A stretch of DNA of 64,000 nt. Origin: Oculina patagonica (lineage: Eukaryota). The notes under the pieces were generated by a model. That model made no database searches. It was not told the DNA's origin and saw only the letters and a program-made list of their open reading frames with translations. Shown here in pieces: positions 31,200 through 47,579 of this stretch. How positions within the stretch are numbered: position 1 is the stretch's first letter; every line of letters starts with the position of its first letter. A program made the position numbers and the translations under genes. The DNA is taken from NCBI RefSeq assembly GCF_052425735.1, contig NC_135761.1, positions 8,432,001-8,496,000 on the forward strand. Reading direction: 5' to 3'.

Positions 31200-34100
31200 A
31201 TGAATTTCTCTTGTATTCTGGGTGTTGTTTCTTTCTTCTTTCAACTTTGTGCTTCAGAAAAAGAGCTTAAAAGGCGGCGGAAAATGTTTGTAAGACCATG
31301 CTTCGCTGAAGATGAACCTAATCGTTTAACTTGTTCACATCCAGAGGAAGATTGCGACGAGGAAACTAGCGACTTAAGACTTGTTCGCTTGGAGGCTTCA
31401 AGGGTAAGTTTTCGCAATTGTTTAAAATAACTCGGAGTGATCGAGGTAATACGAATCAGTGTTATATGATAAGAACTGTGTGTCTGATAAGTCATCTAGC
31501 TGAGCATGACAATCAGTTTACAAAATACCAGCTTTGCGTTAACGAAAATATTTCCTTTATAGTTGAAGGGATTAGTAAATATTGCCTTGAATAGGGTTAG
31601 CAGGTCACAAGTCCGCCATACATCAATAAGGAAATATTCTCTCTTATTTTCATAGCTGCCGCTGTTCTAGAAATTAAATAATCACTTAAGTTTTGCCAGC
31701 GCTTTGTCAATAACTAGAGAAACGTGTTTTTTCCTTTCATTTTCTAATACAAATTAAAGATTTGACTCTCCTAACATACATTGTGGATGACGTGAACAAA
31801 GGAAACGTATAAACCGGTAAATTGTCTTGAAAGTCGGTAAGGAAAATATTATTGCTTTGTTGGTTCACTTCAGTTTGGTTAGCCGTATGTCTTGCAAGCA
31901 CATGTTCTTGTGAAGGAGCCGTTTTTCTTTTTTCTTCACCGTGCTGTGATGAAACACGTGTTTATGACTTAACTGTTGTATATGGTAGATAGGTCACGTA
32001 CGATGGATGTACCTGGAAGAAGGGAGAAGTTACAAGGTGATCACAAGAGCCTTGAAACCTTTACTGTTCGGTGAGTTAGGATATTTGGTTTTTGTAATAT
32101 ATAGATCTACAATGCAAGTCAAAAGTAGTTGGGACACTTGTTAAAGCATTTTTTAATTATACAAGATATTTTTCGTACTACTCTCTTTGTCCTCGCTTCC
32201 CTTCAACCAAGAATTTTGGTGTATTGGATGGTCAATTCACAACATTGCTTGCGGGAGAGGGGGCTAGCAATCATTTTCCCTGAATTGTGCCAAGTGTGCC
32301 AACACTTATGACCTGATAGCGCACTGAATATAAAGCTCTCGTTTTAAAGATGCTCGTTATCCAGAAACGCCATTCTTAGACCTGGTAAACAAAGAATTTC
32401 TACGGTACCTAACAAAAAACTAATTCCCCGGTTTTCATTTTCTCAAGAAATCCCTGATTTTCTATCGGACCAGGAGTGTCAGCAGATCATTTCACTGGCG
32501 AAGGAGGGTGGCCTGAGCATGAGTAAAGCAGGGCATCAGTCATACGAAGGAGACTTGGACGAGGTCATGGAGGAGGGTGGTATGCATGCTTATTTGTATG
32601 GGCGAAAATTATTGTAATTATTGTAAACAAAATAAAATGCTTGTTCTTTTTCCTCTAAAATTTAAACATCAGCTTTAGCGTTAGCAGAATCGCTATAAAA
32701 AAGTCTCGTTTAAATTCCAAGAGGAAATTTCTGAGTTCCTTTTCAAGTCTTTTCAGTTCTTTCGAAAAGAAAATTCGATATTTATTCACATTTTTATGCA
32801 AATGAAACACAATTATAAAGGAATGATTTACACCAGCACTTGTACTGGCCTATTCTGACTGTCTCGTGCTGAGTTTACACACTTTAAGAAACTAAGAGTT
32901 TCGGAAGATTTACAAATGCAAAGTTTCGCGAGTTATATTCTCGTGGCGCAGTTATTCCGTTCTAACTCATCGTAATCATGACGTCTCAATTTTACGTATA
33001 TTTTCAATTTCATTTTAGACAGAAATGCAACACTTGACCGCAAAGACCATTTTGCTCGAGATTTTAATATCTGGGATGCAAACAAAGATGGCTTTATTGA
33101 TCTTCAAGAGGTAATATAAATGAAACAAGCTATTATAAGTTAAACTAAGGTGTCCTCCTCTGTATACTTTTATCTGGAATGAGGTTCGGATGGCTCCGAT
33201 TATAAGAGACAATTTCCTTGAAATCCACAATCTCACACTTATTGCAGATCAAAGAGTTTGCTCAGAAGCACAAAGCATTGCACTTGAAGAAAGACGAAAT
33301 ACATAAAATGTGAGTATGAGTGGGGTCTCTTCCACGAACTGAAAAAGGGTGGCGGTGGGAGTGAAGGGTGGAGATCCCCTGATTAAAAAGACGTAAGCTG
33401 AAAACCTACATTTTCCCCTCTCTCTCTTCTGAATCTAATACTGGGGCTGAACAACCCAAAAAGCTTGATTTGATTTGAAAATAGAAAAACAATTTCCACG
33501 CCGGGAATCGAACCCGGGCCGCGGCGGTGAGAGCGCCGAATCCTAACCACTAAACCACGTGGGACTTGACAAGAACTAGAAGAGGATCTACGTCTCAAAT
33601 TTAAAAACGTATTTAAGAATCAAAGTAATGGGTTCTGGATTTTAAAGGATTTTAAAGTACTTTGTTTTATTTTGAAAGGCTGCAACGCTCAGGAAAAGCT
33701 GGCAGTCTAGTTAAAGGTAAATTGGGACAAACTGTACGGGTAACTAAAAAAAGACACAAACACAAATACAATAGAACCTTTATTTAAACACGATGAGGGT
33801 TTTGGGGTTGATCATTTTCTGAAAATAAATCAGATCAGGAAACAAAAAGTGCAAAAAGTACAAAAAGTGACTAAATCAGTCTTTTTGGGGCTTACTTAGT
33901 TACTGACTTTTTAAGAAAAAGCTATTTCCTTCTTAAAGAAACTGTTGTCCTGCGTCGGCTCCAGGTAGTGAAACATTAAAGCTGATTTCCAGTCCGTACT
34001 GCGCAGACTCGGGGTTGGTTTTTGTTTTGAATTCGTTGAAACGTTACACTTCGGTGACAGCATACATGAAGTTTTTTAGTCCGCCATTACAGTTCGTTTC

Positions 34101-36154
34101 GTTCAAGAATTTCCGATGAGCTGAAACGTCGGTTTGAAATAGCGTCAAGGTTCTTCTACTCGTATTATTTTTTGCAAGGATATCTGGCGTTAGTAAGCAA
34201 GAAAAAGGTAAGTTTGTCGCGAAATTTTTAGTTTTCTTGTAAACATTCGTTCGTCTGAGGCTCACATAAACATTGCAGCCGAGATTGCGCAGTACGGACT
34301 GGAATTCATCTTTAAGTTGATTACCAACCTTTTACTACTTTAATTTATTAAGTTTATTCAATCAGTAATTAAGCAAAGAAATCGAATTTCACCCCTTAAA
34401 ATAATGATAACGAACATCAGTTGATTTTCAGATAAGATGACAAGAAGGCTTTTCGTTGAGTGGAATATAAAGAAACTTCTTTTGTACATGGAGTTTCTGA
34501 AGACAAAAAGTCCTCGCCATAGATCTCGTTACAGCCAACAGGCCTGGCTGCGTCAGGACAAAATTACCCACCCAGTTTTAAAGGGCATCTATGAACGGTA
34601 AGGGATAGTGATATTTCACTGACCGCACGAGTTAGTGGTCCTTGATAACATCATATTCAAACCAAACTAGCCTCCTCCCAAAGCAACTCCACTGCTAGGG
34701 AAGACTAGGGTCCAACGAAAGGGGGATGAACTAAAAAACTGAACTAGGAACGAAACAAAGTGAACGAGAAGGACTAGAAAGGACGAGTTTTCCTTCCTAG
34801 TCTTTCTCGTTCACTCCCCTTTCGTTGGTACCTTGTCCTCCCTCCGCAGCGGAGTCAGGCCTGCGGAGGAGGCTAGAATCAAAGATGCCTGATATTAAAT
34901 TGCTACAATGTGAGTAAGAAAAGGTACATTTTGTCCACATCTCGCTACGTATTTTACGGCGTCATGAACTCTTTTTACCTTCTCTCACAGAATAGCAAAG
35001 TTAACAAAACTTCCAAGAAAAATCATTCATGGCAGCGAAGCAATGCAGGTAATATCATTATTTTTGGAAAAATCTCCTGCCGAAAAATTAAGCGCTTATT
35101 TATTAACATTCATACTACTCCCACAGTCGAATCTCGTTTATAAGGGCCTCGTAAAGACCGCAGAAAACTAGCTGTTGGTATAATAATTAAGGGGCCTTTT
35201 TTTTCAGAAAACTTTGAGGCAGTGAGCTGCAATCGAAGTCTAAAGCTTATAGGCTTTGATTGAATTTCCTCATTACATCGGGGCTTTGCGGAACGGTATA
35301 CTTTGACAGAGTCAAATTCTTAAAAAAATAAGGTTTCTAGAAAATTGTCTTCATGATTTCATGTATGTCATGTCCTTTACATATTTTCAGGTTGTTCACT
35401 ATGAAAAGTATGGTCATTATCATGCTCATTTCGACACTGGCATAGAACACACCAGCATTCCTTGCTGTCATCAAAATCATGCACACTTGCCATTATGTAA
35501 ACTCTGCAGGTAAGTGGAGTCTGGAACCTACAATTTGCCTCTGGTGACAACAGAATATAAAGCTTTGTAGGCGAAGTTCCCCTTCGAATGAAATTTTAAA
35601 ACTGAATTAAAGTCATTTGACAAGGTTAGATTAGAGATTTCAGGTTAAGGAATCAAGTTAGCGTTGTATTGTATTCAATAAAATTTATTGGGTCTCCCAT
35701 TTGTGTCCGATTCAAAAGATAAATTCCATTTTGCCGTGCGTCTGTTCAGTTATAGATCACAGATGACGTCAAAATTTGGTAAGAACCTTAAGTGGCCAAT
35801 GGGCCGCAGGGAGCTCGAGTTGGTCACTAATGTTCTTACCACATGTTAACGTCTTCTGTGATCTTCAACTGAACAAAAGTTATAGACAAAACAATCATAT
35901 AAAACTCGGGTTTGTAGGCTAGTTGATAAATAATTTGATTTTGTTGTTTGTTCATTCAATAATACATGCATCAACAGATTTATTACAATTCTTTACTACC
36001 TGAATGATGTTGAAGAAGGTGGAGAAACTGCGTTTCCCTTTGCACATAATACAACCATCTCCCGTGAGGTGCGTATGTCTTCGCTTTGTTGGTAGAAACG
36101 CTTGCTGGACAGTATTACTTAATGATTGTTTTAACCCTTATTTTGTTAATTTTA

Positions 36155-36197
<43 letters not shown>

Positions 36198-46441: not shown

Positions 46442-46682
46442 ATTCAGCTGAAATTCGTTCATCGTTGTTTTAAGCCTGTCATTTTTTGCCAAATCTGAAG
46501 AATTCTTACACAGGAATGCAAAAAGTCTCCACACATCCTCGTGTCACGTGTCTAGACACGTGGTGACACGCAGGAAACGTGGCTGGTGGTGGATCGGACT
46601 TTACTTCAGGGAAAGCTGGTCTTCGCTGGCCACAATTATCACTGAGCTCCTCTCTTCGGTACTTACAAAATGATAAAAAAAA

Positions 46683-46754
46683 TTCCCACGCCGGGAATCG
46701 AACCCGGGCCGCGGCGGTGAGAGCGCCGAATCCTAACCACTAGACCACGTGGGA
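46683..46754 (-). tRNA. tRNA-Glu(CTC)
   Basis: Identical to the 25355 copy; immediately followed by a T-run terminator (A-run ~46675-46682 on +). Confidence 0.97.
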
Positions 46755-47579
46755 TATGGCTGTTGGAAGAGAATACTTCAAGGATAAGTCTAAAAATAAA
46801 GAATTTTTCAAAAAGTGTTGAAGTTTTCAAAAAATATTGTATTTAATTCATATATTGCTAGAAATAAAAGTGCCACGAGAAAGAAAAGTGCCAGAGAAAG
46901 AAAAAGGATGAACATCCGATTTCTAACATTGAAAGAGAAGAAAAAGAACTGATGATACGGAGAAGCTTTCTTATAGACAAATGCAAACTAAATTTCAAAC
47001 GTTGCTGAATTTGGACTCAGACGACCAGGTACAAAGCAAATTAGCATTTAAAACCAACATTTGCCCTACTGTAGCTTCTCTTCTGTATTAAAAATCCATT
47101 TGAAATTAAGCGTGTGTCTTGCCGAATAAAAGAACCTCTTAATACCTCTTAATACCACTGTCCTTTTTGCAAACGCGAGGCGTAATTTGGTTACTTGCTT
47201 AATTTCAATAATAAATAATAATTTATTTTAGTGACGCTTAGTTTGAAGTTGACTAAATACTTCGAATAGACCACCCCGAGTTTTCTTAGTATTTTACAGA
47301 AACCTCCAATGAACAGTTCAATTTTTGCTTTGGTACATCTTCGCTTTTTGTTATTTTTTTTTTTTTTGTATTTTGCAACATAAACTTACTACTTGCTAAA
47401 AATGTTGAAAATGTAATAAGCGCCCATCATCGATTAAGCGCCCAACTCAAATAAGGGCCTATTCTAAAGGTGTCTTTAAAATGCGTCCAAGGCACTTAAA
47501 GGCGCTACGTCACGACCTGCGCATGTGCGAGATTTCATTCAGTTCTCGTTGAGTTTTAAAGCATCCGCCATCTTGAATT

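Follow-up and report, generated by a model that had tools for sequence, protein, structure and literature searches.

Co-duplication of glutamate tRNA genes with receptor genes in an array of the coral Oculina patagonica

Why do glutamate tRNA genes recur among the members of a receptor array in a coral? The question is raised by a stretch of 64,000 nucleotides of the Oculina patagonica genome (C4:8432001-8496000; the window below), in which four tRNA-Glu(CTC) genes are interspersed with six genes for G protein-coupled receptors (GPCRs) and a P4HTM-like gene (P4H). A preliminary description of the window proposed that a P4H fragment, an antisense tRNA gene and a receptor gene had been duplicated together as a block, and that the tRNA genes may act as recombination substrates or as insulators in an undescribed system. 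The first proposal is borne out by the collinearity of two units in the window, by homology of the tRNA flanks and by gene order in a second coral; an undescribed functional system is not supported. In our best reading the receptor expansion carried the tRNAs along as passengers, and they are neither its cause nor its regulators; passive co-duplication, together with birth-and-death and concerted evolution of the tRNA family, is the probable explanation of the locus. It is an instance of known processes, ordinary hitch-hiking in tandem duplication, and not a new system.

ARAGORN confirmed the four tRNA genes reported for the window. Copies of the receptor array are labelled T1-T10, and C1 is the copy on chromosome 1. 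From left to right the window holds GPCR1 (4320-5318, minus strand), T3 (25355-25426, plus), GPCR2 (26870-27823, plus), P4H (31185-37268, plus) with T4 antisense in an intron (33493-33564, minus), GPCR3 (38318-39280, plus), T5 (41087-41158, minus), GPCR4 (43359-44318, plus), T6 (46683-46754, minus), GPCR5 (52555-53508, plus) and GPCR6 (60607-61686, plus). T3, the plus-strand tRNA of the preliminary description, lies 1.5 kb upstream of GPCR2 and in the same orientation.

Self-comparison and sensitive local alignment show that unit B (40824-44351), which carries T5 and GPCR4, repeats unit A (33142-39309), which carries T4 and GPCR3, in collinear but decayed form. Positions 33142-33195 match 40824-40877. 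The P4H exon segment at 33139-33303 (plus) contains a 22-mer, already noticed in the preliminary description, that lies at 33270-33291 and again, with one mismatch, at 40929-40950; it is unique to these two sites, was matched in none of 100 shuffles, and is followed by the tRNA in the same order in both units. Together these matches make up a relic of the P4H exon-5 region in unit B (40824-40950, plus). The local alignment of the two left flanks, with the tRNA left out, scores 84 against 31 +/- 4.8 for shuffles (z ~11). On the other side of the tRNA, the last P4H exon (to 37268) and its 3′ region (37005-37567, plus) are the template of a stretch in unit B at 41560-42070 (plus), to which 37026-37567 aligns at 69% identity. 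The exon in this copy is dead, as had been claimed, with 2-bp and 9-bp deletions, a frameshift and a stop. Further on, 37795-37939 matches 42876-43015, and GPCR3 is 81% identical to GPCR4. Since collinear markers lie in order on both sides of the tRNA, the duplication took in the tRNA as well, and decay of the P4H part came later. A tblastn search with the P4H exons found none in unit B besides the exon-5 relic and the last exon, and no relic of the last exon in any unit other than unit B. The receptors have a ratio of non-synonymous to synonymous substitution rates (dN/dS) of 0.24-0.35 and are therefore under purifying selection. The decay of P4H beside a retained tRNA and receptor, as first described, holds. 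A (GAT/GAC)n microsatellite occupies ~40700-40810 in unit B, where unit A has the EF-hand exon region.

The same arrangement is found in a related coral, of which we read ~94 kb in overlapping loci on contig ctg21039 of an ENA metagenome assembly (ERZ25067872). Its receptors are 75-85% identical in protein to their O. patagonica orthologues, and its P4H exons 75-89% identical in amino acids. The order starts with a GPCR1-like receptor (minus), five tRNA-Glu(CTC) genes (plus), the GPCR2 orthologue and P4H, whose intron corresponding to that of T4 likewise holds an antisense tRNA. It continues with the GPCR3 orthologue, an intact tRNA (minus) at the T5 position and the GPCR4 orthologue, and ends with a 41-nt tRNA remnant at the T6 position followed by the orthologues of GPCR5 and GPCR6. 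The five tandem copies occupy the T3 position, were multiplied as tRNA only, and have a 3′ flank homologous to that of T3. Since both species share the arrangement, it is not a product of faulty assembly, and the A/B duplication is older than their divergence. Orthology of the receptors was assigned by flank synteny and not by a GPCR tree, since coding identity does not track synteny: that of GPCR3-6 is out of step with it between the two corals, GPCR3 being 77% identical to its syntenic orthologue and 82% to the orthologues of GPCR5 and GPCR6. This mismatch suggests gene conversion among the receptor paralogues. The association of tRNA and receptor thus recurs in the same order in the related coral, but it does not extend to the other loci searched. 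No tRNA-Glu match was found near other GPCR clusters in a genome-wide search of O. patagonica, and none lies within 20 kb of the receptor loci of Orbicella faveolata and Desmophyllum pertusum, in the latter of which a P4H gene adjoins a receptor.

Homology on both sides of the tRNA is seen within T1/T2, T4/T5 and T6/T7/T10/C1, so the non-homologous flanks that would point to independent insertions were not what we found. With the tRNA masked, the flanks of T1 and T2 are 94% identical and those of T6, T7 and T10 81-99% identical; C1 aligns with T6, T7 and T10 at 73-80% over 650 bp across the tRNA. Collinearity of the C1 copy extends over 50835-51297 and 52044-52370, immediately before GPCR5, and the alignments indicate that a block of tRNA and GPCR5-like receptor was copied to chromosome 1.

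These units are tied to P4H by a candidate micro-exon of 38 nt (33679-33716, plus) with AG/GT borders, predicted from conservation: the 71-bp block around it, at a distance of 90-160 bp from T4, shows 93% identity between the species, as against ~70% for the rest of the intron. T4 itself lies between the 33139-33303 segment and this micro-exon, not directly before the exon at 34425, where it had first been placed. Relics of the micro-exon accompany T9 (z=12.6, 0/300 shuffles) and C1 (z=3.8, 2/300 shuffles) at a similar spacing, and alignment shows one near T7 as well. Of the block, T6 retains the upstream part alone, including the motif AAAAGTGCCAC, and two copies of the motif AAAAGTGCCA (46866-46894, plus) can be aligned with the sequence immediately preceding the micro-exon in T4, T9, C1 and T7. 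Given these relics at a shared distance, all units with a minus-strand tRNA and a plus-strand GPCR descend from the tRNA in the P4H intron. The 11-mer AAAAGTGCCAC, the flank motif by which the preliminary description had linked T6 to unit B, has four matches against 1.6 expected, a count reached in 7 of 100 shuffles, and was dropped as independent evidence; its alignment upstream of the P4H micro-exon holds.

Are the tRNA genes still kept? A cloverleaf with anticodon CTC was found by ARAGORN for T3-T6 in the window and for T1, T2, T8, T9, T11 and C1; T7 and T10 have the anticodon CTT (Lys), changed at gene position 36, and a T-stem mismatch. One canonical sequence is common to T1, T3, T6, T8 and three copies of the related coral. 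T4 (substitutions at gene positions 12 and 70) and T5 (positions 21 and 65) have one acceptor-stem mismatch each, T9 has lost the conserved U8 (T8C), which hits the first A-box position, and T11 and C1 have T-stem mismatches. The B box matches the consensus in every full-length copy and the A box in all but T9, and by inspection a run of at least four T lies within ~15 nt of each tRNA 3′ end. Where flanks align at 73-86% identity, only 0-4 of the 72 positions in the tRNA body are changed (P 1e-3 to 1e-6), and the T4 and T5 orthologues differ at 4 of 72 positions between species, against ~18 expected at flank rates. The copies thus do not decay neutrally, and the neutral decay that the preliminary description had set against its own proposal was not seen; change in the bodies is far slower than in their flanks.

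The history that we favour would have started from a tRNA-Glu(CUC) gene antisense in an intron of the P4HTM-like gene, beside a class-A GPCR gene. Blocks made of the 3′ part of P4H, the intronic tRNA and the downstream GPCR were then copied repeatedly, in tandem and segmentally, presumably by unequal crossing-over. Truncated P4H pieces would have had no function and decayed in the copies, and purifying selection has held the GPCR copies. The 72-nt tRNA bodies would have been kept by gene conversion or by selection on tRNA function or dosage, retention for function being our supposition. Single tRNA copies still degenerate, are halved, switch anticodon or multiply alone, in the usual course of birth-and-death.

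Several observations weigh against this account, or limit it. The conservation of the tRNA bodies may reflect purifying selection or gene conversion, which two species do not tell apart. Among GPCR-linked copies, none of 12 substitution events falls in the B box; with 1.8 expected (P ~0.14), the figure is uninformative. T4 and T5 persist in two species despite their acceptor-stem mismatches, a pattern that also fits a role needing only the RNA polymerase III (Pol III) promoter boxes. Finally, we found no P4H relic or flank homology linking the type-I units T1-T3, whose tRNA and receptor share one orientation, to T4-T10 (type-II). The alignments accordingly support a common origin for the units of minus-strand tRNA and plus-strand GPCR only, not for all copies including T1-T3.

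The alternative that survives best, unlikely as we take it to be, is that the tRNAs are kept as insulators, bound by TFIIIC and Pol III, that let neighbouring receptors be regulated independently. A tRNA lies in the spacer between two receptors in seven to eight cases, the B box and T-run are kept in every full-length copy, even those with damaged stems or a changed anticodon, and both corals retain T4 and T5 in spite of their mismatches. In other animals tRNA genes can insulate and are enriched at domain borders (PMC5607496 refs 42-44; PMC7567086). The array resembles such insulators and TFIIIC boundaries in that tRNA genes with near-consensus promoter boxes lie between RNA polymerase II genes of one family; it differs in that the coral tRNAs are absent from half of the array, are dispensable in the related coral and are known from sequence only. 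Thirteen near-full-length receptors have multiplied in a dense plus-strand sub-array (C4:8562574-8622058) with no tRNA at all, nor is there one in the related coral's downstream dense receptor array. In that coral the 3′ half of the T6 orthologue is deleted together with its B box, and both neighbouring receptors are intact open reading frames (ORFs), while another spacer holds five tRNAs. The absence of tRNA-Glu from the other GPCR clusters of the genome and the non-significant sparing of the B box also count against insulation, and one tRNA per unit is expected anyway from tandem duplication of tRNA and GPCR. A need for insulators between receptors is thus not supported in either coral. A facultative chromatin role of the array tRNAs is possible on this analysis. 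Its more specific form, somewhat less likely still, is that Pol III/TFIIIC complexes at the tRNAs partition the array into separately regulated units, a tRNA-gene (tDNA) boundary for receptor choice; if true, it would explain the persistence of T4 and T5 with damaged stems but consensus-matching promoter boxes.

We give a slightly lower probability again to the reading in which the tRNAs drive the expansion, either by offering dispersed, almost identical repeats to non-allelic recombination or as barriers at which replication forks break, so that they would mark where duplications begin or finish. In its favour, identity among the copies is 94-100% over their 72 bp and most of them point the same way, and detectable homology in unit B and the C1 copy ends ~270-350 bp past the tRNA 3′ end, which places the tRNA near one edge of those blocks. 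Yet homology lies on both sides of the tRNA in every alignable pair, so that the tRNAs, proposed earlier as recombination substrates, are internal to every mappable duplicon. The ends of young duplicons, taken from a local self-BLAST of the cluster at >=85% identity (85-99.8%), do not fall at tRNAs; none is within 300 bp of one, and the nearest is 435 bp away. Receptor ORFs of 900 bp with 75-96% identity also make better substrates than a 72-bp repeat, which is short by comparison, and the tRNA-free sub-array has expanded equally.

Independent arrival of the tRNAs by retroposition, a SINE-like (short interspersed element) route or transposon capture, with chance proximity to receptors, is the least probable reading, suggested by the orientation difference between T1-T3 and T4-T10 and by a MAFFT alignment of 150-bp flanks in which the four window copies showed little similarity, an impression overturned by more sensitive local alignment; it is largely refuted for T4-T10 and C1 by the homologous flanks in each group and the collinear markers that surround the tRNAs, by the lack of a shared SINE body or poly-A tail (each 72-nt copy ends in its own T-run, and 3′ flanks differ between flank groups), by the occupation of orthologous positions in the second species, and by the absence of a TTAA or terminal inverted repeat signature at the left edge of the C1 copy.

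Passive co-duplication also agrees with what is known of tRNA families, which grow by tandem duplication and evolve in concert or by birth-and-death, their young alloacceptor remoldings being mostly short-lived pseudogenes (PMC4981973); tandem tRNA clusters are described in plants (PMC12652284, PMC12308677). Like such families, the coral set has near-identical paralogues with diverged flanks, local amplification of the tRNA only (five copies in the relative, three to four on unplaced contigs), degenerate and truncated copies, and a young Glu-to-Lys anticodon change (T7/T10). Unlike pure tRNA arrays, its unit is mixed, combining a receptor with part of a host gene that carries the tRNA antisense in an intron, and for this reason the tRNAs stand one per receptor spacer. 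A second parallel is the long arm of zebrafish chromosome 4, where most tRNA genes are interspersed with expanded NLR and zinc-finger families (PMC11075544). Both loci embed a large share of the tRNA genes in a fast-expanding multigene region. The zebrafish arm, however, has thousands of copies of many kinds in a context of heterochromatin and maternal expression, whereas the coral locus has about a dozen copies of one isoacceptor in ~0.3 Mb, is known from sequence alone, and has a duplication block and origin that can be traced base by base.

About half of the O. patagonica tRNA-Glu(CUC) genes, including four of the five canonical copies, lie in one lineage-specific GPCR array. Receptor expansion would thereby reshape a housekeeping tRNA family as a by-product, traceable base by base, and tRNA copy number would be coupled to gains and losses in a gene family unrelated to it. 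With Pol III genes in constitutive use now standing among receptors that are presumably cell-type-specific, the array offers a convenient natural setting in a cnidarian for testing the tDNA-boundary idea.

The count rests on a genome-wide search, in which the numbers of tRNAs and receptor clusters are lower bounds. It gave 23 tRNA-Glu matches at >=90% identity. Of these, 11 lie in or near the array (C4:8417598-8682963), 10 of them inside it, and two unplaced contigs account for a further eight. Chromosome 1 has one (locus C1:18.68-18.71 Mb), which precedes by 1.7 kb an intact receptor with 87% identity to GPCR5. The remaining three, scattered over the genome, belong to a second isodecoder. This second tRNA-Glu(CTC) type (C8:16094764, C6:28863033 and C4:3740821, mutually identical) has five differences from the array type, including a changed acceptor-stem pair, and no receptor cluster adjoins it. 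The unplaced contigs (C1231:3670-7766 and C1908:1715-6625) carry a P4H paralogue with three to four tandem antisense tRNA-Glu genes in one intron, 480-670 bp apart and in the next intron relative to that of T4; one copy has the anticodon TTC on a CTC-type body. These contigs may be an unassembled part of the receptor-array region.

The CTT pair (T7/T10) lies outside the window, at C4:8505060-8505131 (minus) and C4:8544714-8544785 (plus), window-relative 73060 and 112714. It represents one event, copied by an inverted duplication of 98.5-99.8% identity. This young segmental duplication, ~11-16 kb long, pairs window 61561-64000 and on to C4:8509443 with C4:8536487-8547216, has an 8.8-kb insertion in one arm, and carries T7/T10 and receptor pieces.

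The host gene lies between GPCR2 and GPCR3 and is multi-exon, its exon-bearing ORF segments starting at 31185, 31989, 32348, 32982, 33139, 34425, 35307, 35934 and 37005 (all plus). It appears to be P4HTM-like from an EF-hand at 32982-33116 and both halves of the oxygenase, with 2OG-FeII_Oxy_3 pieces at 35934-36092 and 37005-37265. As fragments, the single exons all score under the Pfam gathering thresholds (EF-hand E=2e-4; PF13640 E=0.046 and 2.8e-4); the H-x-D motif and the distal His are visible in translations of single exons, not of the whole protein. An assembly gap at 36427-36653 falls inside a P4H intron. PF13640 runs on across it, from positions 26-50 before the gap (35934-36092) to 56-97 after (37005-37265), so no exon is missing; the flanks of the gap are also collinear with the gap-free contig of the related coral, order and orientation being preserved. 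Being intronic, the gap leaves the finding unaffected. A structured RNA in the T4 intron was considered and rejected, as Rfam gave nothing in the intron beside T4 and the conserved block is better read as the candidate micro-exon. Further P4HTM-like paralogues or fragments lie at both array ends (C4:8392656-8398725, minus; 8623331-8624625, plus; 8625462-8629679, minus; 8631170-8640288, minus), one of them abutting a 500-N gap at C4:8624961-8625460, and no intronic tRNA was found in those that were read.

All six single-exon ORFs of the window scored as class-A GPCRs, at 79-92 bits against a 7tm_1 cut-off of 30.5. GPCR1 is an intact class-A ORF (PF00001, E=4.8e-26), inverted relative to the other five, and GPCR2 to GPCR6 are open ORFs with 7tm_1. 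A wider read (C4:8392001-8656000) holds ~30 near-full-length receptor copies and a dozen fragments, with T1-T10 all within C4:8417597-8544785.

A tandem repeat with a 69-bp period (~29 copies, 78-92% identity) occupies window 19796-21800 and is overlapped by a 619-amino-acid minus-strand ORF (19782-21641). The ORFs at 409-1035, 1321-1935 and 22879-23727 contain reverse-transcriptase zinc-binding, Kelch repeat and hAT dimerisation domains, and probably represent remnants of transposons and a piece of a Kelch gene. In the related coral, the receptor array contains a run of large ORFs (196-586 amino acids; L052:14345-20874), one of which has a Pox_A32 packaging-ATPase domain; the run is possibly a Polinton/Maverick-like insertion.

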